From: Pavona decussata
Lineage: Eukaryota
DNA: 64,000 nucleotides
NCBI GenBank assembly: GCA_977016875.1
Contig: CDRNST010000047.1
Location: 1,302,001-1,366,000, forward strand
Direction of reading: 5' to 3'
This document shows, piece after piece, positions 1,844 through 58,453 of this stretch. Within the stretch, counting starts at the first letter, position 1; each line of letters begins with the position of its first letter. The notes under the pieces were generated by a model. That model ran no database searches. It saw only the letters and a program-made list of their open reading frames with translations, and had not been told where the DNA came from. Position numbers and translations under genes: made by a program.

Positions 1844-2022
1844 ATGTTATCCTGGAAGCTCGGCAAGAGAAAAATCGCCGTCCCCCAAGGCGCACGCGCA
1901 CAGCCTTCACGCACCAACAGCTAGGAATACTGGAAAAATCCTTCAGCAAAACGCATTACCCGGATGTGGAGCTTAGAGAGCAGATTGCTGCAAAGACCAA
2001 CCTACAAGAAGGCAGAATTCAG
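1844..2022 (+). CDS. Dmbx: Dmbx paralogue A exon 2 (179 bp; homeodomain residues 1-46)
   Basis: AG/GT bounded, open frame, same length and phases as exon 2 of B, C and E. Confidence 0.92.
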
Positions 2023-3134
2023 GTGAGTAAAAAAAAAAGAAAACAAAAAAAAATTGGGCACTTTCGTCTTATTGAAAGAGTGCGCACGAAGCGACCGTCG
2101 CTTTTTGCGCACTCTTTCAATAAGACGAAAGTTTTGCAAAACAAAAACAAACGAACACACGAATGAATGATCAAAAGAATTTAGAAACGTAAACGGATTT
2201 TTATCAAGTATTTCCATACACCACTGATCCAGAGCATAGCGGTTTGCGATTTTTACGCACAAACTAGCAGTGCATCAATGGCATCAAGGCCGTACCTTCC
2301 CGACAAAATGACGCTTATTTTTGGTTTTTCGACAGGAAAAGCGTTTATTCTAGTGTTGCTTATAAACACCCTTCAGAAAACCACAAGAAGTCGGTTTCTA
2401 AATTACAATTACAATGAGAATTTATAGAGCGCCAAAATCCAAAAGTTTACAAAAGTAAGAAAAATTCATTGCAAAGATAAGGGCGCTAAAAATATATACA
2501 AAAAATCGTTCAAACATGTGAAGATTAACTAGATATTAACTAAATGTTCGTTTATAAAGAAACGTTTTTAACTTATTTAAAAATATCAACTGAAGTACAG
2601 TTCCTTAATTAATTCAATTGGTAATGTCAGTTCCATAATTTAGGAGCAAATACAGAGAACGCTCTGTCTCCATAACTCTTAAAATTAGAAACCAGAGTAA
2701 CTAATAGTTTTGAAGACGAAGAAGAAGAACTAAGGTTGATCTAAGATACAAAACCCACAATTTAGTTCAGTTTTGCTCTTGCTTTTCAGGTTTGGTTTAA
2801 AAACCGACGAGCCAAATATCGCAAGGAGGTAAGAACATTACTTCTGCCAGATAACTATGAAAGTGACGACGAACACATTGCTACCCTTTGCCCAGTGACC
2901 CCGACGCAAGGCCCCGCACCATCTTATTTTCATTGTAACTCGGTTCCCCGTTACTACAATTATAACGAGCCTATGGACCCATTAAGACCTTTTGGATGTC
3001 CTTCAAATATGTGCACCCATGCGCAGTTGACAGCACATACACAGTTACTACATGCGCATGGACCTCAAGGCTGGAAGCCAGTCAGTAAGCCGATGATGGA
3101 TCATGTACATTTGGGAGAAATGTGGCGTGGATGA
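1844..3134 (+). CDS. Dmbx: Dmbx-like PRD-class K50 homeobox protein, paralogue A; 5'-partial, join(<1844..2022,2790..3134)
   Basis: Splice sites: tttcag|ATGTT at 1844, CAG|gtgagt at 2022, tttcag|GTTTGG at 2790, TGA at 3134. Translation: (D)[73 protein letters not shown]... K50, KTHYPDV and the DxILEAR leader are Dmbx hallmarks. No exon 1 found in 1-1843. Confidence 0.9.
2060..2132. repeat. 73-nt inverted repeat / hairpin in intron 2 of Dmbx A
   Basis: ACTTTCGTCTTATTGAAAGAGTGCGCA (2060-2086) is the exact reverse complement of 2106-2132. The inner AAGCGA/TCGCTT also pairs. Confidence 0.9.
2402..2750 (-). mobile_element. LINE (L2/CR1-clade) 3' fragment, degenerate ORF2 C-terminus
   Basis: The minus strand reads ...[29 protein letters not shown], then broken frames giving ...TSVDIFK and KLKTFLY..., a typical L2/CR1 ORF2 end. 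Confidence 0.7.
2790..3134 (+). CDS. Dmbx: Dmbx paralogue A exon 3 ([12 protein letters not shown] plus tail)
   Basis: In frame with track ORF 2895..3134; polypyrimidine tract and cag acceptor. Confidence 0.9.
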   Translation, partial: VWFKNRRAKYRKEVRTLLLPDNYESDDEHIATLCPVTPTQGPAPSYFHCNSVPRYYNYNEPMDPLRPFGCPSNMCTHAQLTAHTQLLHAHGPQGWKPVSKPMMDHVHLGEMWRG

Positions 3135-3490
3135 TACGAATTGACTTGAAGAAAATTGAGCAGTGTATCCTACTATTTTGGAAGACTTTAATGAGGCTCA
3201 TTTGAAGTAGTCGAGTACTAACAGGCAATGTCAAAGTAATTTGCTTGTTCATTTGAGGAAGATTTGAAGAGATGAAATTTTTGTAAAAGGGCAGCATTTC
3301 TGCTCACGTAATGAGTATATTAGCTTTGTAAATTGCGTGTAAATATGAATTGTCAAGTAGTATCACCAAGGTCCAAGCATAACCCCTGTGCCCTTGTATA
3401 TCAAGTGGTCTCCATCCACATGCAGGAGGTCCACAATAGTTGAGACAAAAAAATCAAATAAATAAAAAAAAAAAAAATTATGCGGTTTAA

Positions 3491-3617
3491 ACCGACGAGT
3501 CATATCATAAATCGATATATTATGATCATCCGGGTGAGTGTAGGACGGTCCCACGACTGTTTGAGGTCACATTGAAAGACGGTTGGACAACATGAGCGGA
3601 AGTCATCATCAAAGTAA
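3491..3617 (-). mobile_element. Penelope-like terminal repeat relic with decayed hammerhead
   Basis: Minus strand TTGATGATGACTTCCGCTCATGTTGTCCAACCGTC follows the CUGAnGA...GAAACGUC layout with core mutations. Confidence 0.4.
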
Positions 3618-4665
3618 ATTGTGGATCGTATAAAATTATCAGCTTACGGTGTTAGTTTCCTGTGGGTTTGATGTGCATTTGCATCCAAGTCACAGTGCTA
3701 GACACAACAGCACCGTAGTCATGTTCTGAGCTGATTTGTGACCAAATGGACCTGACTTAACAAACACTCACAAGGAGAGCAGCTTTAACGAGAAAGTTTC
3801 ACCTTACTTGCCACTGAAAACGATTTCTTCCGCTGTAAAAGAAACAAAAAAAGATTATCTTTCTTCCGGAATTTTTTTGTGCAAAATTGTGTTAAATCTG
3901 TCATGTAACAAAAGTTTGGCTATCTGCCGTGAGAGATGCCTCTAAGGTCTTCTAAGTTGAATACAAAATTGAAGTAAATGTTATCTAAGATCACTGATAT
4001 GTTGGGATAAATATTGGCCGGTGGAATACCTTAATTATTCTATAATCAGATGATTTCCTACCATTGTGTTTCGCATGTCGCACAGCATTAGCTAAAACGC
4101 ACGAGCTCACATCAAAGTCCAAGCCTAACGTTTCTTTGTGTAGAACTGTTCGCTGTAAAATATTTTCCAAAGAGTACAAATTTTCATGCGTGGGCACTCC
4201 TGAGAATGAATGGATATAAACTAGTAATAATCATGGATTGGTAAAGTGCGTTCGAGCTCATGGCATCCAGACCGAAGCGAGTCAACCCGCGGGACTTCAC
4301 TTAGCCAGCGGGATTCATAGCTCTCGCATGAAGTCGAGGCGGGTGGTCAACCAATCCAAGATGGCGCCTAAACCCTGCAATCCAGAAAAAAGCGACATGA
4401 ATAGTATGCGTTCTCCTAACGTCGAACGCAATTTATTTACTAAATAAAATGATCAGATGTTTCAGTTCTAAGTCCCCTGGGGATGTAGTACGGTCTCCAT
4501 TTTCGAGAAAAGCGACTGAAAGCTTGTTATGCTGGAGCTAAGGACAAGCAGAGACCCTGACAATTTGTTAACAAAGTGTTCCGGAGGCTTCAAGAACAGT
4601 CAAGAACGTTGTAAAGGCTTGTGGAAAGTTCCAGAATAATCCGTGCGTGACATAAAGGTCTAAAA

Positions 4666-4826
4666 TAGACCGTTTCCGGGTTGCTTTGAACCTCATTATG
4701 AAAGCGAGGCTAAGTGCAAACTTCCTGTCATGAAAATTAATTTTCACTCATATGCAAACAAAACTAATTTTCATATGAAAAGTTTTGCACGTAGCCTCGC
4801 TTTCAAAGCAACTCGGAAATGACCTA
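4666..4826. mobile_element. TA-flanked MITE
   Basis: Imperfect TIRs TAGACCGTTTCCGGGTTGCTTTGAA / TTCAAAGCAACTCGGAAATGACCTA, plus internal IR GAAAGCGAGGCTA / TAGCCTCGCTTTC. Confidence 0.75.
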
Positions 4827-7618: not shown

Positions 7619-8176
7619 CCGGGCCCGATAAGTGATTTTGGTGATATATGTTTCTTAACAGAAGTTAATTTTTGTTTTACAATAACTGTCCAAATTCCCG
7701 CGCGCTGATTGGCTCGTAGCTATTGTCTATAAGAGTAAAGACAATAAAAATGACGTCAGATGTAACGCGCGCGCTTTCTCAACGAAAAAAATAGCCAATT
7801 CTGCTCGTACTTTTTCCATGTTATTGTAAAAAACAAATCGAAGGCAGTTTTCTATAGTCTATACTCTTATAGACCATAAAATGACGCCATAAAATGTCCA
7901 AAACTTGGCAGTGAAACCACTCGCCTGCGGCTCGTGGTTCCACTTGAGTTTTGAACATTTTTTGACGTCATTTTATGGTCTATAAGAGTATAGACCATAG
8001 AAAACTGTCGTCGATTTGTTAATTAGCTTTGAATACTAAATTTTAAAATCTTACAAATTTATGAAAACATTGGCCAAGTACCATTTCTGCAATCATTGTG
8101 TAATCGACGAAAAACATTTAAAAATAGACTTATCGGGCCCGGTAAGTTACCGGGACTTTCGAGAAACGGGCCCCTG
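7619..8176. mobile_element. GGGGCCCGTTTC-TIR MITE (5'-truncated), interrupted by a nested element
   Basis: 7619-7675 plus 8024-8176 align to the uninterrupted copy at 20981-21206; right TIR GAAACGGGCCCC-TG. Confidence 0.75.
7676..8023. mobile_element. Non-autonomous element with ~190-bp internal foldback (possibly Helentron/Helitron-type), inserted in a TT context
   Basis: IR AACAAATCGA..CAGTTTTCTAT.GTCTATACTCTTATAGACCATAAAATGACG (from 7831) pairs with the arm ending at 8020. T-rich ends. Splits the host at GTT|AGC. Confidence 0.65.
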
Positions 8177-9562: not shown

Positions 9563-9587
9563 CAACAACAACAACAACAACAACAAC
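9563..9587. repeat. (CAA)8 microsatellite
   Basis: Direct reading. Confidence 0.9.
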
Positions 9588-12273: not shown

Positions 12274-12319
12274 AACCGGGACAGCTGTTTCGAGCTAGTT
12301 GGCTTTCGTCAGCACGGTT
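12274..12319 (-). ncRNA. Type I hammerhead ribozyme motif (non-LTR retrozyme-like), slightly degenerate
   Basis: Minus strand AACCGUG-CUGACGA-AAGC(CAACUA)GCUC-GAA-ACAGCUGU-C-CCGGUU. Intact core, palindromic helix III ACAGCUGU, GUC triplet, 6-bp helix I with one bulge, A-C mismatch at the base of helix II. Confidence 0.7.
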
Positions 12320-16444: not shown

Positions 16445-16445
<1 letters not shown>

Positions 16446-16496
<51 letters not shown>

Positions 16497-16497
16497 A
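16446..16497. repeat. (TAAA)13 microsatellite
   Basis: Direct reading; explains spurious ORF 16377..16568. Confidence 0.95.
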
Positions 16498-21206: not shown

Positions 21207-24200
21207 GTCTCCCCAAATGGACAGCGGCCAACAGACTCGGAAAGGAGGCACTCCCTCAAAAGATATCTACACGTAGGCATGTTATGGAGTTGAGCAATTT
21301 TGGTGTGACTTAAGATAAATATCCTTGTGGTATTACGGCAAAAAATTGTATGAAATTTTTCTATTTGGCTATAGAGGTATAGATTTCATAGGATTTGTGA
21401 ATATGGCAGGAAAAATAATGTACAGCACCCTTTGTCTCCGACGAAGGAAAGGGTGCTATATAAACAAAAATTTGGGCGGAATACTTTTACCCACAATTCT
21501 GAGGGGTAGAACCCCTCGGGTAAATTAGTTCCAGGTATTAACCTGTGTTATTCAAAACTCCATGGTTGGTCACGTTTTGGCCTGATTAGCTCGTTGCACT
21601 CAATAAACGCTTCTGGTAATTCGTTAACAAAACATTTGCAGTGCGTCAGTGAAACGAATTTTAAGGCCACAAATTAACGAGTCCAATCATTGAAGATAAA
21701 AATACTGGTCAAAATACTGGATTTATATACTTTAAAGCTCCCACAAATGTGGCCTTAGTGGTTATTTTTCTGACCATTCAGTGATACCGTGACTTACTGA
21801 TGGTTTTATTAATCAGCTTAGTTGACCAATCGTAGTTTTCCAATGAAATCTGGCTGAGATAAAAAACTAATGCAAAATGAAAACTTAAACAACTCCTAAG
21901 AAAGGAAACCCCTTTTTATCCTCTGTTTATAAGAAAAACAATTAGTACCGTTTTCTACTGTAAGAGCCAATTCGTTCTAAATTTGTCAATTCTACCAACA
22001 AACACTATCTGGGGCTAATTGCTAGTTTGGTTTCACCATTAGTTTTCACGGAGAAACGGTTTCCGCTAGAGCTCAATGGAAACATTTCACCGACTTCCTT
22101 CCATCTGAGATGCTGTACACATCTGAAAATATCAAAAGAAGCAACAACTTTGACCTTTTAATAACAAATCAATTCCAAAGGTTTATGCAAATCGAAAGCC
22201 GATAAAATCAGAAGTAGTAGTTAAGTTAAGACTCCTTCGACCGATGAACACGCCGATTACATTATGTTTCTTAAAAGAGCGAAAATAATGAGGGAAAGAC
22301 TGAGTTTTTGTTAGTTTTTAACTTGTTTGTATATAATAAAGCTTTCCGCCGGAAACATAATTCTTCGGATACTGAAAATTTGCTAAATGCCTTAAGCTTA
22401 AAATATCCTCACGTAATGATTCAGGTTGAGACGCAAGATTCTTAGATCGTGTGTGGGCATGCGCCCACATACATATCTTGATCTCCTTTGTATTTGCTAG
22501 GTCACGATAAAGTGACTCTCTTGTTGCATCGTAACGAATGACCTTCCATTTACAATGTTTAATTGAGGTAAAACCTCGGAGATGTTTGTATTGGTGAAAG
22601 CGACAATTTCGTGCAATGTCGCCATGGTGCGTTCTAAGGTTACCTAAGGTTGGATTTGCGGAAAGTTTTGGCGATTTCACGCTAGCACGCAATAGGCATT
22701 CATCGCGTGTTCTGTGGGCCGTCGTAAGCTCTTCTCGTTCAATGACCAGCCTGTAATAATCAATCAGTTAAGAAGGCTCATTAGTAAATAATCTTATCAA
22801 ATCCTTGTGTAAACGAAAATTCGGCGAAACTGTTCGGCTTCAAAATCACTGGCAAATGTTTAATGGAATTGAATTCTTAGTTAACATTTCCAAGTAAAAC
22901 GTTTGAATCTTCATTGTAGGATCGCAAACTGGATACAGGGACGAGGTTGAGATCAGCGCAAGAACTCGCAGATGTCATCTCAGTAATCTTGACAATATCC
23001 CAAAAAATGCAATACCTTGATCTTTTTATTAAAATTTAATCTGTAGACTAAGTACCTATTACACCATTATTTGTTTAACGCAGAAAACCTCAGCGTCTCG
23101 GCCTCTGAAATGATTGCCTCTTCTCTTCGAGTTGACAGAGGCATCATTTTCGATTATTCTACAACGTTTCTATTTACTCCTTGTGAAATAGGCGTCATTG
23201 TTGTAGGAGACCATCGCATGTTGCATTACCCTTGTCAATCTCTAGTTATGGTCAGCTAAGCTAAAATCGCTTTAAGTCCTTTTCATCCGACAGCCATATA
23301 AATATAACGCTAATTCTAATACTCTATAAGCATCATCCTTTCAAAAATACGTTTCCTTTCTCCATAAAATTGCCAGTCTTAAAGAAATAACAAGTTTTGT
23401 TTATACATTGGGTCCATTCGCTGTTGCGCTGAGTGATAGAACAATTAACTCCGCCTCATGTGTACTTCAACTTCTTTAACTACTGGGAATTTTTCTCGAA
23501 GGAGGAAAAAAGATTTAACAACACTTTGACAGTTTTCTCACGCGCAGTCACAAAGCATGACTAGACAGGATTAGGGAATGCCGTAAAGAGTGGCAGATTT
23601 AGGCTTTTGAAATGAGCTCACGGACCAGTTTACTTCCACAATACTAAACAAACAACCCATCACGCATACAATGCACCGTGGAATGATGAATGACGGGCTT
23701 AACGTAGTGCAAAGCCGAGCGTAGCGCATTCTAGCAAAGACAGAAGTCAGGGAACTTAGGAAGAGTTTATGTTCAACTGAATAAGGTACAAACGTACTTA
23801 ATTAGAAGCGTATAGACTTGTTTTACCATATTGAAAACACTGAACCAAATTTGCATTCACCTCATGTTAGATTTTACTTATACGACATTCGCAATTTAAA
23901 AAAGTGTGTCTTAAAACTTCTTTAATTGAAGTGAGAAACGTAAATGATTTACGAAAACCAGCTCACCTTTTCATAAATCCTTCTGTCTGAAACAAAGTTG
24001 ACAACTTGATTTACTATATTTTTCTCAATTTATCGTTTTAAATAGCTATTTAATTATGAGCTATCTCTTACCAAAATATGAGAATGTGGGCGTTCAGTTG
24101 TGTAGCAATTCAATAGATATCTTTGGTAATTCTTTCCAGAAACAAACCACCAAGGTCTCAGGAAAGTTGCTATCGAAGCCAAAAAAACTGAGTGACAGAA

Positions 24201-27874: not shown

Positions 27875-27998
27875 ATGGAATCAGGACTGAGCACATCGTC
27901 ATTCTCCATCGATAACATTCTGAAACCAGACAAATGCGATTCATCGCAGGAACCTCGTTCAGCAGATAGAGCTTTAACACTGGCTGAGCGCCTCGCTG
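27875..27998 (+). CDS. Dmbx: Dmbx paralogue B exon 1 (eh1 FSIDNIL plus ALTLAERLA)
   Basis: ATG at 27875; 41 codons + 1 nt; G|gtaagt donor. Confidence 0.92.
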
Positions 27999-30410
27999 GT
28001 AAGTACTGTCTAGCGAATGAATGCCCACCCAACCAGCCATATGATCAAAATAAAGAGATAACAAGGGTCGATAGAAGCAGTCTCGGTACAATCTAATTTC
28101 ATCACAGTCCAAAAACGTCCAATTTCATTGCGATCCAAAAGTTAATATCCTAAAAAGATCTGCTAATAAAAAAAACACTTGCTGTAAAATTTTTTTCCGT
28201 AAACTTCACTACAATTAGATCCGCTCTCTGCATTGAGGTGAGCATCGGATAAACTTAAAACACTTCATTATTTAATCTCACGCCCGATTTATCTACTGAG
28301 ATGTCTATTTTCTTAAACGAACGCATTAATTATAAAACAGCCCTGATTGAATTCAACCAACATCATTTTTACCTCATTTGTTTTTGGGAAATGTTAGTCC
28401 ATAAGGGTTTTTCCAAACAGTTTAAATTTTTTTCTTTTTTTGCGTGATTTCATAGTCACGGGTTGAATGGCGCATTCGTATCAGTCATTTTGATGCATCG
28501 TTTATAATCCCATAACAGGCTTATATAGTAGCTGTTATGGTGTCATGCGATAACGTTTCAGGAGAGCAAATACGCTGTTATTAGTCTTGTCTTCTCAGAC
28601 AAAAACGTGAAACTATCCCACATTGCTAATATTCAAACTACATTTTTAACAGGGAAGAGTAACGTTTAATACAACACTCTTTTGTTTTACCTTTCGGGAA
28701 AAGTTCCATGACCATCATTAGCCCTTGAAACAACAAATAATTAAAAAAAAAAAGGTCAACAAAACAGTGGTACAGGCCCTAACAAACATAGAGGTGTACA
28801 GCATACTGTAAAATGAAGGTTATAATGTCAATCCGGATCTTGACGAGACAAAAAGAATTGACTTTCTGTTCAATTTTAAATGACCTGATCTTGGATTGCA
28901 GTCGCAATCGTGGATCGTTAGGATTGGTTTCGAAATCTTATTTCGGATGGTTTATTCTATTTACCGAACTCGTGATATGAACTTGGGGTTTTGCGGCACT
29001 GTCGTTCTGAGTACATGCACGGCAGATACGGATTGATTTGTTTTCAGATTTTCACTTCAGCTAGAAAAATGAGATAAACGTCTGGAATTACTAAATCGAT
29101 CGGAAAGTGGATCAGCTGATTAATACGAACGTTACCAAAAATAGACGTCTGGAAGAGGCGATTTCCATCCCTAAAGCACTTACCCTTTCCGAGGAGTGTC
29201 ACTTGACAATATTTTTCTCTGCAGATATAATACTGGAAGTGCATTATGGATCGTCGAGGGGAAAACATCGACGGACGCGCACTGCGTTTACCCATCAACA
29301 ACTGCAAATACTGGAAAACACATTCTCCAAGACGCATTACCCAGATGTAGTTATGAGGGAGCAGTTGGCAGCTTATATTAACATTCCTGAGTCAAGAATC
29401 CAGGTTAGCTAAAAGTGTTATTAAGTGAGTAATGCGATCGGTTCAGCACTCAATAAAAGTAATGCAATATATCATCACTATGTATTTTCAAACCCCACGT
29501 TTTCAAAACAAATATGGCACATTCTGAACATTTCTAACTGCGGTCTAGGTTCCACTCTCCAACTTGATAAAGGGTAGCCTCTAGCACCGATTATGCAGCT
29601 TAATGAACTGCAACTGCATGAGTTCTTTAACTGAAACATAGAAGGAGTCGTGGAATGTCAGTATTAAAAAGAAAAAAAAGAAAAGGGTTTTTAGGAAGGT
29701 TTGGACGTATCAGCCACGATAGATTATTTCACGCATTTTGGGGGATATTATACAATGATAAAACATCCACGACAACAACAGAAACAAAAATACCGAGATA
29801 CCGTTGGTCAAAACAGCTTGCACCATTCGCATAAATATAATTGGATTTAAATTGAAAAAATAGAAATCGACGCCGAAATAAGTAAACGTTTGCCAGTCAC
29901 ACTATGTTATGGCTCAAAAGTGAGCTTCGAAGAGAGTTTTACGTTGTGATAGAAGTATTTAGGCTCATAGCAATGACTTTAAAACTTTTTCCAACCTGCA
30001 TTATAGCTTTGACTTTAACATGTTTCGATAAGATTGCGTTATTGACATCTTAACTGTATGCTAAATTTTAGGTGTGGTTCAAAAATCGAAGAGCAAAGTA
30101 CAGAAAACAAATGAAAGACGGCGAAGAATTAACCTCATCGGAAATAGAAAATAAAGCATTGGAACGTCATTTCAACAGTCATGAGGCCCCGTGGAGCCCC
30201 CAACACTTTTACACAGCAAGTGGTTTACCTTTCGGCCCAGGGAATGCTGCTACAGCTCAAAGCAACTTCGCACAGTACTCCTGGTCGGCCGTTCCTTTGT
30301 ATACCTCAAGCCCATGCGCATGTTTGCCGTCGTATTCTGACACTTCAAGAAGGTCTTGGTCTTGCACGGCGTGTTATGAAAACTCTGATACAAAAACCCA
30401 TTTACAATAA
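27875..30410 (+). CDS. Dmbx: Dmbx-like homeobox protein, paralogue B; join(27875..27998,29225..29403,30072..30410), 213 aa
   Basis: [18 protein letters not shown]...[10 protein letters not shown]|[60 protein letters not shown]|[14 protein letters not shown]... Donors gtaagt (27999) and gttagc (29404); acceptors ctgcag and ttttag. Frames join without stops. Confidence 0.95.
29225..29403 (+). CDS. Dmbx: Dmbx paralogue B exon 2 (179 bp)
   Basis: gcag|ATATAATACTGGAA ... ATCCAG|gttagc. Confidence 0.94.
30072..30410 (+). CDS. Dmbx: Dmbx paralogue B exon 3
   Basis: ttttag|GTGTGGTTCAAAAAT; matches track ORF 30072..30410. Confidence 0.93.
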   Translation: MWFKNRRAKYRKQMKDGEELTSSEIENKALERHFNSHEAPWSPQHFYTASGLPFGPGNAATAQSNFAQYSWSAVPLYTSSPCACLPSYSDTSRRSWSCTACYENSDTKTHLQ

Positions 30411-38462: not shown

Positions 38463-38646
38463 ATGAATCAAGAAGCACTTACTGGCCCAAATGCAGGGTA
38501 TGAAAGAGAAAAAACAACGAATTTAAAATCATCTTCCTTCATGATAGAAAATTTGTTGAAGCCTGACAAGACGAGAGGTGAACCAGAATGCCCGGTGGAA
38601 CCTCCGTCCAAGATAAAGGCCCTTTCTGTGGCAGCGAAGCTTGCAG
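38463..38646 (+). CDS. Dmbx: Dmbx paralogue C exon 1 (eh1 FMIENLL plus ALSVAAKLA)
   Basis: 61 codons + 1 nt; G|gtttga donor at the position homologous to B, D and E. Confidence 0.85.
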
Positions 38647-41600: not shown

Positions 41601-43189
41601 AAAAAAAAAGCAACTGGACACTAACATCGTGTTCAACATTACGTGTTGCTTGAGCTGCAAAGTACATCCAAATGAAGTGCAACACAAAATTATATGATAC
41701 TGAACAATGCGATCAATTCGCTTCAATTGGTTTCCAGTACAGGTGCAAGCATAAGCTCAGCCATAAGCGTTAACTTCAGTCATCTCATGTAAGCGCATTC
41801 CTCAACTACACAAACAAAAACAAATTGAGGATTGGGGCGGGAACAAATACTTCAATACGAGCTTTAAATACCAATGCAAACAATCGCCGAATCTGTTGTT
41901 ATTGTTGTGTTTCAGATATCATATTAGAAGCTCATTACGGTACTTCTGCCCCACAGCATCGGCGCACTCGCACTGCTTTTAATCGTCACCAGTTACGGGT
42001 TCTTGAGGACACGTTTTCTAAGACTCATTACCCGGATTTAGCTTTAAGAGAAGAGCTGGCAAACTTTACTAATCTACCAGAATCAAGAATACAGGTATGT
42101 GATAACTGCCTTGCTTTATTTTGAAGTACTTCTTTGGCTGAACTTTTTTGTCCTTTTTTTACAATGTAAAAATCTGAAAATGATAATGTAACCCGAGAGA
42201 AAAAGTGGCTTCAATTGATATGTGGAACCTAGCAGCTAAAGCTCATTCAGAACTTGAGTGAGACTACTAAATGATATCTATCTAGGATGGAGATAAGTTT
42301 GTAGAAAACACGACCGTAAGACGCGTTTTTTAAAAATGTTGTTGTTTCTTGTTGACAGGAAGTGTTTCTCCATAATTTTGTCAGGATTTTTTCTAGTGCT
42401 ATAAATTAAAGAGAACAATTTTCGCATTCACTACAATGTTAAGGCAAATGAATTTAATACTATATGTTGTGCATATGCTATGCATTCCACTGTCTTATTT
42501 TCCTTTAAAATTATTATAACCTGTCAATAAATAAGCCTTCAAATTTACTTTTTCCAAGCAGCTTGCAACCTGTTTAATACGCCCACGTCTCATCCCAAGA
42601 TGTCATCATTTATGTAATATATCCAACACGAGGAAGATTGTTTATTAAATCTACAAACACCAAGAAGTGGTTGAAAAAACGAGGCGCAGCCCATTTTTTT
42701 AAAAAATTAGGTTCGATATAGCTTCTCAACCATTATATAATAATTCAGTAGAACAAAAGTTCATCAAATTTTGTGATAATTAAGATCACATTTGCAAACC
42801 TTCTTTCCTTTGTTTTCTCTTCATGAATTATTAAATGTTTGAGAAGTTTTGACACTGCCCTTGTGAAGCACTCTAGTCGATTCATAGTTATACTATAAAT
42901 CATTTTTGTCATTGTTTCTTTACAGATTTGGTTTAAAAATAGAAGGGCAAAGTTCAGACGGGTTGGCACAAGTTGTAATTCCTGCACGACATTATCAGTT
43001 CACTATCCAACACACCAAGTATTTTCCTCAGAAATAAACCGGTCGAACGTGTTTTCAAACCACGAAAGACCCGTATCTTGGATGAATCATGCTTACATAC
43101 ATGAGAGTGTGACGCAAAGCAATTTTACTGGTTACCATCATCCAATGCAAGGCTCCGGCGACTATCCTGTTTATGGTGTTTACATATAG
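38463..43189 (+). CDS. Dmbx: Dmbx-like homeobox protein, paralogue C; join(38463..38646,41916..42094,42926..43189), 208 aa
   Basis: MNQEAL...[12 protein letters not shown]...[10 protein letters not shown]|[60 protein letters not shown]|[14 protein letters not shown]...YGVYI*. Exon 3 is absent from the ORF track and was translated by hand; TAG at 43187-43189. Confidence 0.9.
41916..42094 (+). CDS. Dmbx: Dmbx paralogue C exon 2 (179 bp)
   Basis: tttcag|ATATCATATTAGAA ... ATACAG|gtatgt. Confidence 0.93.
42926..43189 (+). CDS. Dmbx: Dmbx paralogue C exon 3
   Basis: ttacag|ATTTGGTTTAAAAATAGAAGGGCAAAG; open for 87 codons to TAG. Confidence 0.9.
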   Translation: MWFKNRRAKFRRVGTSCNSCTTLSVHYPTHQVFSSEINRSNVFSNHERPVSWMNHAYIHESVTQSNFTGYHHPMQGSGDYPVYGVYI

Positions 43190-44250: not shown

Positions 44251-45114
44251 TGAATTATTAGTGTGGGTGTCAAGGTATGTGGATCCTAAGACTGAACCGA
44301 CCTATCAACAATCTATTACTGGTGAAGACGTCAATGATGTCTTGACAGAAAATGATAAATTGTTTTTTAAATGAGCGTGATATTAAAATGGACCTATTTA
44401 CAGAAGTAAAGCACGCAGCTCACACAGAGCGATAAACGATACAAAACAAAAGATGATAAAGACGTTGAAGATAACAGCTGGAAATATTACATCAGTTGGA
44501 ACAATCAGTCTTGTCTTGCGGCCCGGCACCTTTCAAAAATTATAAGCATCTGACCCAACTGTATAAATATATTATCTCCCCAAGTCTGGGATAACATCTC
44601 ACCTCTTAGCGTTTACTAGTTTGAAATAAATGTCAAATGTGAGAGGAATCCTATGTAAACAGTGCTGGTGCGCTCAGCTAAAAAGAGAATCAAACAGATA
44701 AATAAATGCAGAGACAATTCACTGGAACCAAAGATGTTTGTCGTGTGAAAGATAGTTCGTTACAACCGGTAAGGAAACAGAGCTAGAGAAGACGATTCCA
44801 AAAGAAACGTCAATTGAATTTGAGCTCTGTGTACGTTAAAGTTGATATTATGGTCATTGCATTGAGATCATGCCAGAAAGCAGACAGATTACTGGATAGC
44901 ATTCTCGGTTTACTAGCGGAGAGGATAACTGCTTTAGCATGTGGTGACAAGAAAATTAAGGGGAAGATACTGTAAACTATTACACCTATTACACATTGTG
45001 ATCATTTCGCCACGTTCGCGGAGCGCGGAAAGAAACAGATGAAAAGAAAAGAGGCCGCTTCACAAATGCTAAAAGACATTTTAAGAGACTAAAGAAATTC
45101 AGCTGAACTTTTCA

Positions 45115-45256
45115 ATGGCAGAATCAGCAGATGCACTTCCATTTTCAGTAGCCAACATCTTAAAGGATGATGTACTAAGGGGAGCCAGTGGCAAACAATG
45201 CAAATCTTCTGATTGCAATGCTAGCAAAGCTCTTACTCTCGCTGAACGACTTGCAG
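45115..45256 (+). CDS. Dmbx: Dmbx paralogue D exon 1 (eh1 FSVANIL plus ALTLAERLA)
   Basis: 47 codons + 1 nt; G|gtaagt donor; too short for the ORF track. Confidence 0.9.
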
Positions 45257-48200: not shown

Positions 48201-49376
48201 TCAGTGATAGAAATGTTTGGATGAAAGTTATCCAGTAGATATTTTCTGTAAACCAGAAAAACCTTTTTTGATATAACATAAAATCTACAGGATAACCGGT
48301 TTTGTCATACTGCAACTAAAAGAGGTTCAAAAATTTTAGAAGCTTTCCAAATAGTAATGAAAACGGTAGGTAGTTCTTTTTGTAAAGCTGTGCTTCCATC
48401 TTAACCACTATATGGTCAGGATTAGCCTTATTACATTATCTCACAGCAACAGAATCAGAAAAATATTTATACTTGGCCGCATGATCACAACTAAAATTTT
48501 TAGTAATTTTTAACTATTCCCAAAGACTCCACACGAGCCTTCTTAACCTAACTTCATACATTACCCTCTTAGACGTGATCATGGATGCTAAGAACACTGC
48601 TGACGGTGGTGTTCAGAAGCGTCGACGAACACGCACCGCCTTCACTCAGTATCAATTGACAATTCTGGAGAATGTGTTTTCACATACTCACTACCCAGAT
48701 GTGGTAATGCGCGAGCAGTTAACCCTATGGACCCGATTACCAGACTCTACTGTGCAGGTACAATTCTCACTTCAGTACAAAAGCAAAAAAGTGCTTCACG
48801 ATTCGGCGTATGTGCATTAATCAAAATACTCTGTTCTTGAAGTACATGTAAGTGGGATTTTTAACGCCCTAAAATTGACAACAAAGAGAAAAAGTATTTA
48901 GATACATGCACATGCGCCGGGGTGAAACCTTCACTTTAATTCTATGAGTGATCATCGTCGTATTGCCGAGTAATCATTTGACTGGCAATAGCAAAGAGCT
49001 TTAAAAGAAATTGCTATTCATGACAAAAAAATGAGCTGATACTCTAGTTATGCTTGAGAATGATCCTCACGTCCTGGGACTGTTTGAGCTATTCTACTAC
49101 TGTCTTTCCCGGCAGATCTGGTTTAAGAACAGGAGAGCCAAGTTTCGCAAGGAAAAAAGGACTTGTATTCTCAAAGATACCAAAGAAAAGAGTGACGAGG
49201 ATTCAAATAACACAATACCAGTGAGTCCCATTTGCTGTCCACTTCTGTTACCCATATCTGCACTCCAAGGTGCCACACCCATTATTACGGAACAAACACC
49301 AGGGGACAAAATACTCCTTTTCCCTTCAATCTGTCAGCCGTCATCGCCGTTGACCTCCTCTTGGACGCTGGTGTAG
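45115..49376 (+). CDS. Dmbx: Dmbx-like homeobox protein, paralogue D; join(45115..45256,48573..48757,49116..49376), 195 aa
   Basis: [19 protein letters not shown]...[10 protein letters not shown]|[62 protein letters not shown]|[14 protein letters not shown]... In-frame TAA at 45082 precedes the ATG; donors gtaagt and gtacaa. Confidence 0.92.
47052..47352. mobile_element. CCCGGGGGGTACTCCC-type repeat in intron 1 of Dmbx D (3'-truncated)
   Basis: GC-rich island with repeated ATGGGGTCG; terminus resembles those at 12801 and 62874. Confidence 0.55.
48573..48757 (+). CDS. Dmbx: Dmbx paralogue D exon 2 (185 bp)
   Basis: tcttag|ACGTGATCATG ... GTGCAG|gtacaa; two codons longer than in the other paralogues. 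Confidence 0.9.
49116..49376 (+). CDS. Dmbx: Dmbx paralogue D exon 3
   Basis: ggcag|ATCTGGTTTAAGAAC; in frame with track ORF 49050..49376. Confidence 0.9.
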   Translation: MWFKNRRAKFRKEKRTCILKDTKEKSDEDSNNTIPVSPICCPLLLPISALQGATPIITEQTPGDKILLFPSICQPSSPLTSSWTLV

Positions 49377-50751: not shown

Positions 50752-50917
50752 CAGGGACTCGTTTCTTGAAAGCCCCGATAAGTTTTTGAGTATTAATCAA
50801 ATCCGTTTATTATAATTGGTAAAATGACTTTCAAAAGCAGTAGGGTGAATTCATTTTTAGGTAAATTATGCACAAAAAAGTGTTTTCGGGCTGGACTTTC
50901 AAGAAACGTGCCCCCAG
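50752..50917. mobile_element. MITE, third member of the CAG-flanked GGG...CCC TIR family
   Basis: CAG-GGACTCGTTTCTTGAAAG ... CTTTCAAGAAACGTGCCCC-CAG. Confidence 0.7.
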
Positions 50918-53900
50918 GTCTGAAAATATGCAAACAGAAAATGACGTATTTTGACCTGAAATAGGAACCAAGCCTCACACCCCGACCAAAATAATAACAA
51001 CGTTTACCTCCAGGGGCCCAGCACCTCGAAAAGCAGCCTCCGGGAAGCTAAATGTTGTGCATCATAAAGATGCTTTGAAAATTGGTCGTCCCAGCCACGT
51101 GCATTATGGTCTTAATTTCGTCTATGAAAACTAACTGGACAATCATCAAATGGTCATTTAAAATTAAAACTATGCGATCACTCGGTCCTCCGTGGTTTTC
51201 AGTCTCATGCAGTTCGATGTAATGTCTTTCATTTCCGTTGGCACAGGGTAATGAAGAAATATTTTAGCCTGAAACAAAGCCGGTGTTGGTGAGATGCCGT
51301 TTACTCACAGCATGATAGACCCTCGATGGATGGCGTTTTGCGCTTTGGTTCACCAAAATGTGGATTGAAGCACATTTTGATCACCACAGCTAATCGTCCT
51401 TGTTACACATTTTATGGACAGAGAAAATTCCTAGCTGCTTCATGAGCGAAGAAACATTTTCCGACACCTAAAAATATTTTAAAAACACCAGGCAAAAGCA
51501 AGCATGCTTACACAGCAGGCAGAACATTAACAGTTGGTTTTCACACCCTCTCCTTGGGGAAGCGGAAAATCAGATTAACACATTCAACCTTTTCAATATT
51601 TAAAAACGTTAAGGCGATAATGAACACTTAGGGAGTTCCCTTGAGCCCTTGATCGGCTTTGACAGTTTCTTGTCATACGTTCTATTCATAACAAAATTTT
51701 ACAAGAAGTCCGCCAATAACATTTAACAACAAAATAGGCCTTTTTTTTTTCTTCACAATTGCAGATTTTGTATTTTGGTTTAGCTGTACTAAAACTTGAA
51801 CACAAGCTCGATCGAATCCACGTCCTTCTCTTATCACAAAGACTACGCAATCATTGTTTTGTCGTATCAAAGTCAGTGTAGAAACTAACAACCAAACCTC
51901 AAGTCGCGTGAAATGTTTATGTGGATGTAATCGATCGTAGAGTGCGAAAATTTCAATCAGAAAGACACCAAGTCTTGCTTCCGCAGTACTGTACATTGTC
52001 ATGTGCTTGTCCCCTGGATATTGCAAGGTTGTTCCAAGTGTGTGGATGAAATCTGTAAACTGTGACCATTCAATCAAAAATTATTTAAAATTAAAGCAAA
52101 AACGTTTTCGTTGGAGCAGTTTTATACCACCTCGTTCAAGATTGTTCTTACTTTTAAGTTTCAAATAACCGCCGTTTAGGAGCATTCTCCTGTGGATTGT
52201 ACGCTGTCTGCTTCTTAACTTTTTCCCGCAAACGTTCGAATTGGTGTCTTTTGTACAGAAATAAAAGGTTTTATAGACCTAAAGAGTACCGTGGATGCAA
52301 TTATTCTACCGCCGTTACGTTTTGTGTACACTGCTATAATTATTGTAATTACTCACTACGCAGGAGGTCTCCGGCAAAAGGTGAGAAAACGTGATTGGGA
52401 GTTATTTCTATCAGTTTTCCAACTTTTTTTCCCTACAGAGCCTGATGAATTTATATATTTTTGTACATTTCGAGAGGCAAATGACAATTTGATGACTAGA
52501 TACAAAAACGAAACCGCTTATTTGAAGCACCACAAGCGTAGATTAGCAAATAGCGGATTTAATACCATTATGAGGGATTACAGCATAAGCTTTAAATGTT
52601 TTGAAGAGCGAGTAATGGTTTCCAAAAAGTTTTCTTTTCAACTTCAATTATGTACTTCTGTGGGGGATCTAATGTCGGTGGCTTTTCATTTCGTAACAAA
52701 AGGAACAGTTTAAATAGAATAGTAGTCAGTTATATGAAGAGAAACGGAAACGAGGATAACTTTAACTCGCTCTGCTGCGCTTCTTAAAGCGTCCGATATT
52801 CACCTTCTTGGAAGCACTGTGTCTATGGAATAAAGCATTTTTTAGATCAAAAGCTTAAATATCATGGATCTTATTTCTGATAGAAAAACAAGCACAATGG
52901 CTTTCAAAATCCGTTGATAACTAAGCCATGCAAAAGTGTGATTTACACGGATCAGTAATAGCTTCCACACAAAAAGATCGCGCTAATTGGTTACTACCAC
53001 AATAACTACCTTTAGGTGGGGTATGGTCCTTTCTAATTAAATTACCATCAATCACAGCGACAGGTTTCGCTTATCGGCATTTCAGTGAAACAAAAACCGA
53101 CACTCACAGATGGGAGATTTGGACTATCAATCAAAAAAGGCTGAACCCAAATGAGAAGCTAACCGCGCGAGAAGTCTTTTTTTTACGGACGTAAGAGAAG
53201 TTCAGCTTGAAGTTGCGTTCAATCCATAGACACGAAGGAGTTTCAAAAGGTATCGTCTCTTTGAGTGCCTGTTCTTTGTCAATGATTGGTGGTAGAATTA
53301 GGAACTCAGTTCAGTTTTGTACCTCGTAAAATTTTCTTTTCTCTCGTCCTAAAAATGTTGCATGAAGCTGTTGCAGCTTCTGACTTGCTAGTTATAGTTC
53401 AGTCCATTACAATTGCATATAGAGTACACTGAATGATAAATCATAGATTGCATGATTCCTTAAGTTTTGAATTGGAGTTGGCGAGAAATACACCGCTCCA
53501 GGTCCACTGCAAAAAAGTGGTTATATTGTTTGCTGGCTGATAGAAGCTAATATCGCACAACGTCAAGGCTAATATCTTGTTTATGTAAACCTATCACCTA
53601 AAACAATGTAATAATTCGCGAATTCTGAAAGGGTAGGCTAATGAAATGTTAGCATGTGGCCCACTTAGAGAATTGTATACAAAATAATCGCATTAAAATA
53701 CCGATGAGCAGGATCGCCAGGTTTCGACACCTCTGCTCCCCTGTACCACATACACTTGCAGTTATAATTCGAATGAGAACAGACGACAAATGGAATGGTC
53801 ATTAAGATTTTAACATTTTTGGTATGAAACAAAATGCCACTACTTTGATCTCGTAATTAAAATATTTTACAGTTGCCTGTTTAAAGGTATAACAAATTAA

Positions 53901-53975
53901 GAAATTGCCTACGGGTAGCAGCAGGCAAAAGGAAATTTCGGATTTCTCGCCAGGTGTGGAAATTATCCCAGCAGG

Positions 53976-53983
53976 TATTTAAA
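53976..53983 (+). promoter_or_regulatory. Candidate TATA (TATTTAAA) of Dmbx E
   Basis: About 220 bp upstream of the ATG; a possible 71-bp 5'UTR intron (gtgagt 54066 ... ctacag 54136) lies between. Motif match only. Confidence 0.25.
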
Positions 53984-54198
53984 CACCCCTGAGTAGTGTG
54001 TGACAATTGCCAGACAACGTTACACTTTACAAGTTGAATGGTATACATCTCACCGACATATCCATGTGAGTTTGATAGAGAAGTCAAGGCATATTGATCA
54101 GTCGGTGTTTCACTCCAGGCTTATCTTATTCTACAGTGCTACAGCTACGCTCTTGACAGAAAGTTCGTTCATCGACGCTAACCTGCGAGCGTTACGTG

Positions 54199-54325
54199 AT
54201 GGATTTCGCATCATCGTTCTCAATCGACAATATATTAAGAAATAATCCATCTTCCCGGAATACTAGCCAGGTGTTTAATGAACAGAATGGAGCTCGCGCT
54301 CTCACATTAGCGGAGCGCTTAGCAG
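54199..54325 (+). CDS. Dmbx: Dmbx paralogue E exon 1 (eh1 FSIDNIL plus ALTLAERLA)
   Basis: 42 codons + 1 nt; G|gtatgt donor; upstream in-frame TGA. Confidence 0.92.
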
Positions 54326-57300
54326 GTATGTGATATTTGTTGTAAATTTCTACTGTCATTCTTAGAACAATAATCAATTTGTAGTCTTTTCGTTTACCGC
54401 TGCCGCAATAAATTCAGCATGGAAATTAGCATCTGTAAATCAATAAGTAAGACTGGGTAACATCGCAATTGCTTCTAATCACAGGCAAAGATAGTCTGTG
54501 GTCAATGCCAGGTCAATGACCTCTGTTAAATGGAATTTGAAGGCATAGGCTTTGCTGTAGTCCTGATTCCAGAGTTTGCGTCGTTTAAACTAACAAAATA
54601 CGTTTTTATCTGTTTGTTTGACTCGTTAATGGGCTTAATGATCGTTGCGAAATCGCCATTGAAGACATTGAAACATGGCATCAGGCATTCGACAGTCATT
54701 TAGTTTTCATTTGAGACCATCAAAGTAGCGAATAAGATTTTTTTTTCTCTAAAACGTCGACGATTGAGTTTATGTCGCTTCACTATTAAACTAACATTTA
54801 GTCATACTTTGTTCTATTCTTCTGTTCGTCCCATCTTCTGCATCTTGACCGTACGGGTCTCTTAAAAGCCGACAGACAACTCCTACCGGATTCCGTTCGT
54901 TTGGTACCACATACTGTACATAAGTGTTTTAATAATCCGTTGGCTGTGTTCATTTTACCCCCAGTATTTATTTAAGCTCCAAAACGCTTTTATTATACTG
55001 AACAATGAGCCAGTCACTGAGTTCCTGAAGGAAAGGACTGAGTTCTACATCGTCCAGTCTGCTGTTTTCTTTGGCATTTGAAAATATTTAGTCATTTATT
55101 AATGAACCTTTTAAAAGGTAAAACGTTACTAAAATGATCTTTAGCACTGTGGGGCCTCTCTTCACGTTAGAATGTAATAATTATCTATTATTTTCCACCA
55201 TTAAATATTCACCAGCTATTTAAGATACCCCTGAAATCACTTGCTTCCCATTCCATGGCATAAAAGATACAGGCAAGTAAACTGTATCCCAGTTTGTCAC
55301 TGCTACCGCAAGAGTCCGCCAGCCAGACGTTCGGTTAGGTCAGGTTTATTTTCAAGTGAATAGTTTTCTCTATTTTTTTTCCCTTTCCGAAGCCGAATAC
55401 AAGCTACAACTGACTCGATTGAATTGTTTAGAGGGGTGGCCGGGGCCTATTGACGGTAGACAGGTCAGTCTAGCATGGGGACTGTTCACCTGGAACAAAC
55501 ATTTACTCTATTTTCTTGAATATTAGCGTTGTGAGCAGAATCAGTGTTCTCCAAATTGACTTATATAGCAATATTGTGGCTAGTCTGGTCGATGAAGAAA
55601 AGTTGGAGCCTTACAGTTTCTTGAGTATCAGTGAAATGTGGCAATTTTTTCTTTTTAAATTAAGAACCTATATAAGGAAAATGCTTAATTTTTTTGAAGT
55701 TGCGAGCCTGTCATTTTTTCCCTCTTACACCAGGCCAACAAATTTCAGTGGAACTGAAGCAAAAGTGGCTAAAAAAACCGTTTGTACTAAATTTTGTCCC
55801 ACACATTACCGAAAATGGATAAACAAATTGGTTAACATTTAATCCCGGATTAGCATTAATTGGCTCTCGAACAAAAGGTCTCCGGATACTACACTGTTAT
55901 TAGACAAAGTAAATGAGCCGAATTCAGTTCGAAGAGTATGAAATGAACACAATAACTTTGCTAACTTATACTGTTATTTTGGTTCAAATCCAATTTTCAA
56001 ATTTTGTGATACTCACAACATAATCACTGAATTCGCTGTTCATATGGCCCCATCCTATGATATGCTTTTGCTGTCACATTATACAGCAATGGTACTGTGG
56101 CACGTCGCTAAATTTTACTCAACTGAACACTATAGTCCGTAATACTATATAGTGGCCATGTTTCAAAATCCACCTTCTCTCTCTTGCGTTCATCCATAGA
56201 AGAGGTTGTTGTGACAGTGATAACTTAATGACGATATGATAAAAGCCTGAGCATGCTCCTGGCATGCTTGTAAGGCAAAATAAGTAGTGAAGACGGTCTG
56301 TATCTGAAGTTTGCAAATACTGCCCTGTAGCGTATAGGTCGGTTCTGTGTAAGATTGCATCCATTGCACTGATTGTCCAGCTTTCGTTTGTGTCGATGTT
56401 AGTCGCTAAGAGCCAAAGAACGAAGTTTAAAGCGATTGCGCAGGGTGTGTTTAAATTGTGATAAAAGCTGCTTCCTTGTTCATTTCAATACCTGAAAACA
56501 TGAGCACAGCGCAGATGCGGCCAAGCGGGTCGCACACAAACCAGCTGAGCACTAGAGTACAGTGCTGCCTCGCCTATCAATCCAATGGATGCAAATGCAC
56601 ACAAAAGATAAAAGAACACATCTGTTTATTTTCTTAAATTTTCTGGGTTCCCTGTCTTACGTAAATCTTTTCAGGTCATAACATTAGCTGTTGAAAGCTT
56701 TTTTAAAAAGTAAATAAATAATAGCCATTTTTACGGTTAACTCCAAAAAGTCCTTCTAAGAGCATGGTATCCTTATGTTAAAGATATAATCCTAGAGGTT
56801 CACTATGGCGCCACGAGAGGAAAGCACCGTCGATCCCGCACAGCTTTTACCTATCAACAGCTTGAGCTGCTTGAGAATACCTTCACTAAAACGCATTACC
56901 CAGATGTTGTGATGAGAGAGCAGCTTGCAACTTGGACAAATCTTCCAGAATCAAGAATTCAGGTAACTAAATAAAATTTAAGTAGTTGAAAGGCGTTTGT
57001 AATATAGAGAAAATAAGTGCTCTAACCGGTTGGAAGTTGGATTAACCAGTTCTCTTCTCTTCCCAGTCTGCCCTTTCCTCCCATTCTCTTCTTTTCTCTT
57101 TTCAGCTCTTCTGCTCTGTTCTGTTGTGTTTCTATGACCTCTTCTCTTTTCCGTATCTGATCTTAACCTTAAGGCAATGTGAATTGAAAGGATACTCAAC
57201 CGATAGTAACAGAAATTAACACAAAAGTAAACGAAGGGTTGGAAATTCCAAATAAAGGAAACCAACGCGATTGAGAGGCACAGACATCATGATTGTTTCC

Positions 57301-58453
57301 GTGTAGACTTATATTTATTCTTTTTCCTCATGCACGTTTTTATTAGGGCAGAACCTAAAATGCCTACATCTATAGACAGAAGCTAAAATCATGGATGTTA
57401 ACATCCTTTTCAAAGTAGCGAAATAAAATGCTCGAATGGCATCACACGAAATTCTACAATTCGCCCTCCATTCATGAAGCGTTAAATTCCTTCCATAAGT
57501 TCCTCCCTGTGAGGGTATATATACCTAACAGTTTGATAGTTTCAGTGTAATACCAGCCTTTCTAGATAGAATTCATGGGCAAAAGTGTTTAATTCCTTTC
57601 AAAAACAAGATTCATTGATATTGTCATCTTTGGGTGTTTTCTGCGTGCTAGTTGAAAGCATAAATAAGTTTGGTAATGGCTTTAGAAAATAATACCAGAC
57701 GAGTGTAGACCACTCTCAAAGTAACATTATACCAAGATATTGGACGGATAAATAAAAATTTGTGATTAAACTTATATAGACAGGCCCACCAAGACTAGCA
57801 TTAGCTACCTGCGGGTCAGTCCAATTGTAAATAGTTAAAAATTAAGAAAATAAACATTGTTGTTGGATAAAAATCCGCTGCCATTTCACTTACAGGTTTG
57901 GTTCAAAAACAGAAGAGCCAAGTACAGGAAGCAAGAGAAAGTAACAAAATACACAAAGTCTGACAAGAGTGGCAACCGTGTTTATGACGCGGAAACCAAA
58001 GTTACTGTGAGCGACGCAACGCGGCAAAGTCCACTACCGGTTCCACCGAGTGTAAGCTTTGGGGAAGACAAGTCAGGAGCAGAAACAAGAGTGGTTTCAA
58101 CCCAACATGAACCAATACCAAACACTGAAGGGTTAACAAACAACAATGCCCAGGTGTTCTCTCATCACGGTCAACCCTACACTTTTGATCAGTATCCAAT
58201 CGCCACGCACGATACTCCATGGAATTGTTCTGATCTACCAAGGCACAACACTGGCTTACTTCCAACACTCGAAATGCCGGCGTTTGGCTGGTCTATCGGT
58301 GACAACGATACGTGCCATGTTGGAAACAAACTAACTTCGCGCTGTAGTGTGCGGAGACCAACATCTTCCAGTGTTGACCTGTGGCGATTACAATCTGGCT
58401 GGCAAAACAGCGGTTGTCAGTGGACAGATCAAGTGGGATGTAGACCGTACTGA
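54199..58453 (+). CDS. Dmbx: Dmbx-like homeobox protein, paralogue E; join(54199..54325,56784..56962,57896..58453), 287 aa
   Basis: [15 protein letters not shown]...[11 protein letters not shown]|[60 protein letters not shown]|[14 protein letters not shown]...[17 protein letters not shown]... By eye its homeodomain is the closest of the five to bilaterian DMBX1. Confidence 0.95.
56784..56962 (+). CDS. Dmbx: Dmbx paralogue E exon 2 (179 bp)
   Basis: ttaaag|ATATAATCCTAGAG ... ATTCAG|gtaact; AAG acceptor. Confidence 0.92.
57896..58453 (+). CDS. Dmbx: Dmbx paralogue E exon 3
   Basis: ttacag|GTTTGGTTCAAAAAC; in frame with track ORF 57857..58453. Confidence 0.93.
   Translation, partial: VWFKNRRAKYRKQEKVTKYTKSDKSGNRVYDAETKVTVSDATRQSPLPVPPSVSFGEDKSGAETRVVSTQHEPIPNTEGLTNNNAQVFSHHGQPYTFDQYPIATHDTPWNCSDLPRHNTGLLPTLEMPAFGWSIGDNDTCHVGNKLTSRCSVRRPTSSSVDLWRLQSGWQNSGCQWTDQVGCRPY

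Follow-up and report, generated by a model that had tools for sequence, protein, structure and literature searches.

Homeobox genes in the analyzed region

The subject of this study is a 64-kb stretch of the genome of the coral Pavona decussata (C47:1302001-1366000, where C47 is contig CDRNST010000047.1 of the 602-Mb assembly GCA_977016875.1), which is referred to below as the window. It has a G+C content of 38% and is free of N stretches. Between position 1844 (the first base of exon 2 of gene A) and position 58453 (the last base of the stop codon of gene E) it carries five homeobox genes, Dmbx-A to Dmbx-E (A-E), all on the plus strand. These are very probably five members of an old tandem array of eight Dmbx genes, whose structure and order have been kept by stony corals; the three other members (Z, A' and F) lie outside the window.

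A six-frame scan of the window for the helix-3 motif [VI]WFKNRRAK and for N-terminal homeodomain exons revealed, on the plus strand, exactly five helix-3 exons and five N-terminal exons paired with them. The Pfam Homeodomain family matched all five exon-2 peptides (E from 4e-14 to 3e-12), and the nearest PDB chains were without exception of the paired class (DUX4, OTX2, PAX6, ALX4 and CRX). The helix-3 exons begin after AG and the N-terminal exons end in CAG followed by GT, so that a phase-0 intron (intron 2) separates homeodomain residues 46 and 47, a position that is common among paired-class (PRD) genes. Intron 1 is in phase 1 and sits right before the D of the DIILE motif, with exon 2 opening two bases into the GAT codon. 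In genes B, C, D and E, exon 1 carries an ATG, an eh1-like motif (F-S/M-I-x-N-I/L-L) and an end of the type A-L-T-L-A-E-R-L-A, after which come a G and the GT of the intron.

All 16 predicted introns of the eight-gene array are of the canonical GT-AG type, and their positions and phases are identical in every gene. The joined frames are open throughout the array and encode predicted products of 195-287 aa, in each of which helix 3 reads WFKNRRAK, with a lysine at homeodomain position 50 (K50). The original prediction, made from the letters of the window, had described five plus-strand K50 homeodomains with identical intron positions and phases, intact reading frames, a 179-bp exon 2 in four of the copies, stop-to-start gaps of 24.7, 8.1, 1.9 and 4.8 kb, and exon-3 tails without visible similarity. 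Motif scans and splice-site models recovered each of these features: exon 2 measures 185 bp in D and 179 bp in the four other genes, the gaps A-B, B-C, C-D and D-E are 24,740, 8,052, 1,925 and 4,822 bp long, and the paralogues are 62-83% identical in their homeodomains and 8-22% identical in their exon-3 tails.

None of the other open reading frames (ORFs) of at least 110 aa in the window contains a Pfam domain; the long ORFs at 22318-22692 (minus strand), 51682-52077 (minus strand) and 52291-52713 (plus strand) matched no Pfam family. An Rfam scan of the entire window at the gathering threshold gave zero matches.

Assignment to the Dmbx family

Judged by their sequences, the genes of the window belong to the Dmbx family of the K50 paired class. 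This identity, which had been proposed originally, is backed by a motif preceding the homeodomain, by similarity to DMBX1 and by a homeodomain tree. The 18-residue motif that stands directly before the homeodomain of vertebrate DMBX1 (aligned for P0042, P0100 and P0109) has near-identical counterparts in B and E and can be recognized in all eight coral genes, where the phase-1 intron cuts it between A and D.

When the exon-3 tail of E was used as a query, it retrieved orthologues from stony corals only, several of them annotated as diencephalon/mesencephalon homeobox, and the full sequences of these proteins reproduced the three-exon model of E. With residues 34-118 (motif plus homeodomain) of the Desmophyllum orthologue P0005, coral and sea-anemone proteins ranked first, and more than 100 vertebrate proteins matched over the full length (76% identity over 85 residues, E ~2e-33). 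The top 100+ non-cnidarian matches of this E orthologue were all vertebrate, and nearly all of the specifically named ones were DMBX1.

A homeodomain phylogeny, proposed as a check along with the original prediction, led to the same assignment. The maximum-likelihood tree comprised 43 homeodomains (60 columns), with the genome's own Pitx, five Otx-type, one Gsc-type, Q50 and S50 sequences as outgroups; the Pitx, Otx and Gsc labels were taken from the best matches in PDB, which has no DMBX1 entry. One branch (support 79/88; present in 81% of bootstrap trees) parts the Dmbx rows and vertebrate DMBX1 from all outgroup rows, among them Pitx, Otx and Gsc.

It could be argued that the divergent copies A, C and D belong to other K50 families (Otx, Gsc or Pitx), since their homeodomains are 62-78% identical to those of B and E, an eh1-like N-terminal motif is also typical of Gsc, and the backbone of the tree is poorly resolved. 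However, all three share the Dmbx-type motif over the junction of exons 1 and 2 together with its phase-1 intron, and the above split places them with Dmbx, apart from the Pitx, Otx and Gsc sequences of the same genome. Moreover, the Otx and Gsc genes sit on another contig (C28) and the Pitx gene upstream of the array. We regard a non-Dmbx origin of these copies as highly improbable.

Dmbx is a single-copy gene in most of the bilaterians that have it (DMBX1 occurs as one copy in vertebrates and as two in teleosts), and it patterns the vertebrate mid- and hindbrain. The coral genes share with vertebrate DMBX1 the K50 homeodomain and the motif directly before it, but differ in three respects. 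The eh1-like N-terminal motif (FSIDNIL) found in all eight is missing from vertebrate DMBX1, the listed vertebrate proteins are mostly longer (~330-415 aa), and the C-terminal OAR motif of the latter (24.7 bits in P0042) was not detected by Pfam at E <= 10 in five coral exon-3 peptides or in P0005 and P0023. The OAR motif is an accessory feature of vertebrate DMBX1 and does not define the family.

Extent of the array and neighboring genes

We fetched 60 kb on either side of the window and searched it for the same three-exon architecture. The original prediction had held that the cluster passes the left edge of the window, and Z, A' and exon 1 of A were indeed found there, while a further gene, F, was identified on the right (Table 1). 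The complete array, in the order Z, A', A, B, C, D, E, F, occupies ~104 kb of C47, with all genes on the plus strand. In a whole-genome scan with exon 2 of B, the eight best matches were all located on the plus strand of this contig; the array constitutes the entire Dmbx complement of the genome.

A relic of a Dmbx exon 1, located between A' and A, reads NPFSVSSILKK..., is without a start codon and ends short of the ALSLAVKLA end. Analysis of the 24.7-kb gap between A and B by tblastn (E <= 0.05) revealed no relic Dmbx exons.

Apart from the Dmbx array, the homeobox listing for C47 contained only two genes, one of the Pitx type upstream and one of the Pax type downstream, both on the same strand as the array. 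The former has PITX2/3 as its best PDB match (E 7e-21), and its homeodomain is split between residues 46 and 47 as in the Dmbx genes; the latter combines an S50 homeodomain with a complete paired domain (224 bits). Together with the eight Dmbx genes, these two make up a group of ten paired-class homeobox genes that lie in one orientation within ~154 kb. We consider it quite unlikely that this group is the remnant of an ancestral paired-class cluster acting as one coordinated patterning unit. If it were, it could, for example, use the gene order to specify body-segment identity along the directive axis, and would represent a second, non-ANTP counterpart of the anthozoan Hox cluster.

Table 1. 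Positions of the Dmbx genes and associated features. Numbers refer to the window unless preceded by C47, which denotes positions in the contig.
Feature	Position	Strand	Remarks
Pitx-type K50 gene	C47:1255176-1257290, ~45-47 kb left of window (L032)	same strand	21 kb upstream of Z
Dmbx-Z	C47:1277971-1284607	+	left of window, three-exon architecture
Dmbx-A'	C47:1289581-1295245	+	left of window, three-exon architecture
Relic Dmbx exon 1	C47:1296226-1296336, ~5.7 kb left of window		between A' and A
Dmbx-A exon 1	C47:1299870-1300002, ~2.1 kb left of window	+	
Dmbx-A intron 1 (part)	1-1843	+	
Dmbx-A exon 2, 179 bp	1844-2022	+	DVILE motif and homeodomain residues 1-46
Dmbx-A exon 3	2790-3134	+	homeodomain residues 47-60 (K50), 100-aa tail, stop codon
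Dmbx-B exon 1	27875-27998	+	ATG, eh1-like FSIDNILK, ALTLAERLA
Dmbx-B exon 2, 179 bp	29225-29403	+	Nematostella orthologue 97% identical (aa)
Dmbx-B exon 3	30072-30410	+	colinear with intronless Montipora foliosa cDNA contig (L045)
Dmbx-C exon 1	38463-38646	+	eh1-like FMIENLLK, ALSVAAKLA
Dmbx-C exon 2, 179 bp	41916-42094	+	Pfam Homeodomain
Dmbx-C exon 3	42926-43189	+	positional orthologue in Pocillopora
Conserved non-coding blocks upstream of Dmbx-D exon 1	44299-44947		70-84% identical, collinear with Pocillopora and Oculina
Dmbx-D exon 1	45115-45256	+	
Dmbx-D exon 2, 185 bp	48573-48757	+	two additional codons ahead of homeodomain
Dmbx-D exon 3	49116-49376	+	
D-E intergenic conserved non-coding blocks	51538-51679, 52295-52394, 52565-53134, 53537-54198		72-85% identity, Pocillopora and Oculina, order kept
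Dmbx-E exon 1	54199-54325	+	
Dmbx-E exon 2, 179 bp	56784-56962	+	Pfam Homeodomain
Dmbx-E exon 3	57896-58453	+	185-aa tail region, kept across stony corals
Dmbx-F	C47:1373114-1381503	+	right of window, three-exon architecture
Pax gene	C47:1406417-1409377, ~104-107 kb right of window start (L041)	same strand	25 kb downstream of F

Conservation of the array in other anthozoans

The original prediction had suggested that gene order be compared across anthozoans, and the order proved to be kept in Pocillopora, Oculina and Porites. The order and orientation of C-D-E-F recur in Pocillopora verrucosa. In Oculina patagonica, D is followed by E, and a distance of 73 kb (78 kb in P. decussata) separates this pair from Z and an A-type gene, in that order, on the same chromosome and strand; in Porites lutea Z is likewise followed by an A-type gene. 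The D-E order is also kept in one further close relative, and three Montipora Dmbx proteins are co-located on a single 49.3-Mb record. Orthologues of Z are known from Montipora foliosa (P0141) and Acropora cervicornis (P0154), and M. foliosa also has an E-like one (P0018). In the loci fetched from Pocillopora, Oculina and Porites (L043, L047, L048 and L049), no other annotated genes were found between the homeobox genes.

In Nematostella, the orthologue of B (P0025) is followed, 5 kb downstream and on the same strand, by a divergent K50 gene. An orthologue of B is present in two sea anemones, with 95-97% identity in exon 2. In the compared loci the best match of each exon was its positional counterpart, and gene models derived anew from the loci gave the annotated proteins P0015, P0006 and P0025; the intron positions in Pocillopora, Oculina and Nematostella are the same as in the eight coral genes. 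On the homeodomain tree, D (100/98), F (99/96), B (95/80) and E (80/97) each form 1:1 clades with sequences of other species.

Porites is usually assigned to the complex clade of stony corals, and Pocillopora and Oculina to the robust clade. If this assignment holds, most of the duplications predate the split between the two clades. The duplication that gave rise to B is older than the split between corals and sea anemones. The complex/robust split is dated to ~415 Mya (PMC6214176).

These results have to be set against the view that a single Dmbx gene was duplicated recently and only in the lineage of this coral, in the sense of the cnidarian homeobox duplicates termed independently duplicated (Hislop et al. 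2005, as cited in PMC6214176). The closeness of A and A' (homeodomains 97% and N-terminal regions 74% identical) would fit such an origin. However, for each of B, D, E, F and Z a 1:1 orthologue occupies the corresponding position in other corals, the A type has one as well, the orthologue of B extends to sea anemones, and the tails of the paralogues have diverged almost completely (8-22% identity). A recent origin of the copies is thus contradicted for all genes, with the possible exception of the A/A' split, and as a general explanation it is extremely improbable. The original prediction had spoken of lineage-specific, linked anthozoan duplicates; the linkage was confirmed, but for most of the copies 1:1 orthologues exist across stony corals, and for B in sea anemones as well.

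The A/A' pair

Genes A and A' are the closest pair of paralogues in the array. Exon 2 of A is 97.2% identical in nucleotide sequence to that of A' (C47:1294519-1294697), and this identity is sharply delimited: it falls to ~71% in exons 1 and 3, and the intron sequence next to exon 2 could not be aligned. The synonymous divergence (dS) between the two genes is 0.20 in the homeodomain, compared with 0.66 and 1.06 elsewhere. The sharply bounded identity of exon 2 and the low dS of the homeodomain point to gene conversion confined to the homeobox exon, which alone appears to have been homogenized.

Selection and evidence of expression

Pairwise ratios of non-synonymous to synonymous substitution (dN/dS), calculated by the NG86 method, were 0.006-0.13 for the homeodomain and 0-0.17 for the region preceding it. 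The values for the tails were 0.08-0.83, with those of D and E reaching 0.74-0.83. The original prediction of an old, selectively maintained cluster is supported by the low values in the homeodomain and N-terminal region (0.006-0.17) and by the orthologues in other corals.

In four candidate RNA runs (among 24) that were aligned to gene E, we found no spliced joints. The contigs of runs X6 and X18 look like DNA, because they are also found in the introns of E, and the matches of runs X19 and X20 are short repeat pieces. The result of these runs at gene E is uninformative, and is not evidence against expression.

High-depth matches from coral RNA and metatranscriptome contigs were also observed at 55831-55864, 57768-57865 and 58705-58735; these contigs run on into unrelated sequence. 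The three stretches behave as dispersed repeats, not as Dmbx-E transcripts.

Transcript-like sequences were found in relatives. A B-type protein of Montipora foliosa is encoded on an intronless 1.7-kb contig that is colinear with the B model over both junctions, and contigs of 0.9-1.9 kb from relatives encode full orthologues of E, B and Z, whose intron-bearing genes would not fit into such a length. The literature also describes a DMBX1-positive pharyngeal cell state.

Some of the five copies might be decaying or already non-functional duplicates whose frames merely remain open. This idea draws on the missing spliced reads at E, on the fast evolution of the D and E tails and on the dead exon 1 between A' and A, an example of decay within the array. 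It is very unlikely to apply to any of the five copies, given that none of the eight ORFs is disrupted and all splice sites are canonical, that dN/dS is low in the homeodomain and N-terminal region, that orthologues have been kept for ~415 My, and that orthologues of B, D, E and Z are known from annotation or cDNA.

Conserved non-coding DNA

The synonymous divergence from Oculina and Pocillopora is 0.75-2.3, and neutral DNA should therefore not align with these species. Non-coding blocks that do align with both were identified upstream of exon 1 of D and between D and E. Outside the window, conserved non-coding blocks occur around Z, A' and F, and a 1.6-kb block upstream of Z is also present in Porites.

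Two of the long ORFs mentioned above are located in the D-E interval. The plus-strand ORF at 52291-52713 overlaps the conserved blocks 52295-52394 and 52565-53134, and the minus-strand ORF at 51682-52077 lies just beyond the block 51538-51679 (140 and 131 aa, respectively). Conservation of the D-E blocks is more likely to be regulatory than coding, because Pocillopora and Oculina have no annotated gene at the matching place.

A non-coding element is present in three copies around A' and A (C47:1288737-1288861, 1291898-1292126 and 1299073-1299300), and two copies each of the same element were found at the A-type gene of Oculina (L048) and of Porites (L049). This element may be a conserved regulatory module.

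The window contains 42 TAATCC (K50) sites, compared with 31.4 +/- 5.2 expected, a number reached in 3 of 100 shuffles. One such site only falls in a conserved block. The possibility that this reflects auto- or cross-regulation was set aside, the enrichment being too weak.

Origin and regulation of the array

The array was built by tandem duplication, each copy keeping the three-exon structure. Strong purifying selection has acted on the homeodomain and the N-terminal motifs while the C-terminal tails diverged past recognition, and individual genes carry their own conserved flanking non-coding blocks. Each gene is predicted to encode a sequence-specific transcription factor, whose K50 homeodomain would bind TAATCC-type sites and whose eh1-like FSIDNIL motif, of the Groucho-binding type, would probably confer repression. 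The paralogues were probably retained by dividing expression domains and partner interactions among themselves.

Several observations weigh against this picture of an old array conserved in structure and order. The split that sets the Dmbx sequences apart has moderate support (79/88) in a tree built on 60 columns, and the tree does not resolve the relations among the Dmbx paralogues. Within flanks of +/-10 kb, the sea anemones have only B, plus the one divergent neighbor in Nematostella; in Actinia tenebrosa, B stands alone within +/-10 kb in a locus that has N gaps. Stony corals in general keep gene order unusually well (PMC6214176), and since their background synteny is so high, conserved order alone is no proof of selected clustering. 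The missing spliced joints at E have to be added, as does the fact that we infer DNA binding, eh1-mediated repression and subfunctionalization from knowledge of the family.

A further possibility is that the array is a coordinately regulated unit comparable to a Hox cluster, with shared enhancers or a single regulatory domain and with expression collinear with gene order. The two systems resemble each other in their long-kept linkage and common orientation of the genes; however, Hox clusters are ANTP-class and their hallmark is collinear expression, whereas the Dmbx array is known here from gene order and sequence. All eight genes point in one orientation, with no intervening Pfam-domain gene in the window and no intervening annotated gene in the loci of relatives, and their order is kept across stony corals. 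In Nematostella, moreover, the endomesodermal segments marked by Dmbx1 are a different set from those marked by Dmbx2 (10.1101/2023.01.09.523347). On the other hand, the conserved non-coding blocks adjoin individual genes, which fits gene-by-gene control equally well, the TAATCC sites are only marginally enriched, and the high background synteny of corals weakens the argument from order. Hox-like collinearity is not supported by any result of this analysis, and coordinate regulation of this kind seems unlikely.

Comparison with known systems

Multiple linked Dmbx genes in anthozoans have already been published; what is new here is the larger, eight-gene array. Full-text literature searches yielded no description of a Dmbx array with eight genes that lies between Pitx and Pax and is kept across stony corals. 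Nematostella vectensis is reported to have six DMBX homeodomains (Ryan et al. 2006, PMC1779571). Like P. decussata, it possesses several Dmbx-family K50 paired-class genes, and its orthologue of B has the same three exons; the coral differs in having eight genes in a single array, and clear 1:1 orthology between the two species was seen for B alone. A linkage of one Nematostella Dmbx gene with the anterior Hox cluster has been reported (PMC1779807); on the 2.3-Mb contig of the coral, by contrast, no ANTP-type homeobox was seen.

The tandem Dmbx pair of Acropora millepora, framed as an independent duplication (Hislop et al. 2005, as cited in PMC6214176), is another case of tightly linked tandem duplicates in a stony coral. 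As described in that source it is a pair, in contrast to the eight members found here, whose order is kept in Pocillopora, Oculina and Porites. The homeobrain-rx-orthopedia (HRO) cluster (Mazza et al. 2010, PMC2938728) similarly represents an ancient linkage of paired-class homeobox genes, but it joins three different families, while all members of the Dmbx array are paralogues from a single family, with Pitx and Pax as neighbors on either side.

Our results recast tandem pairs published as independently duplicated as parts of one ancient, stable array of paralogues. They extend known biology and introduce no new principle. The array offers a defined locus for asking how duplicated developmental regulators split their roles in a simple body plan, and the analysis supplies correct gene models, including small exons that ORF-based tracks miss.

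Other paired-class gene groups in the genome

Two further groups were noticed in the same assembly. A region of ~150 kb on contig C28 (C28:1467273-1619997) contains at least five Otx-type K50 homeodomains, one of them with an in-frame stop, and one of the Gsc type; it constitutes a second K50 paired-class cluster of the genome. On contig C67 (C67:2641755-2814993), eight paired domains and several S50 homeodomains are found within ~175 kb, which represents a tandem expansion of the Pax type.

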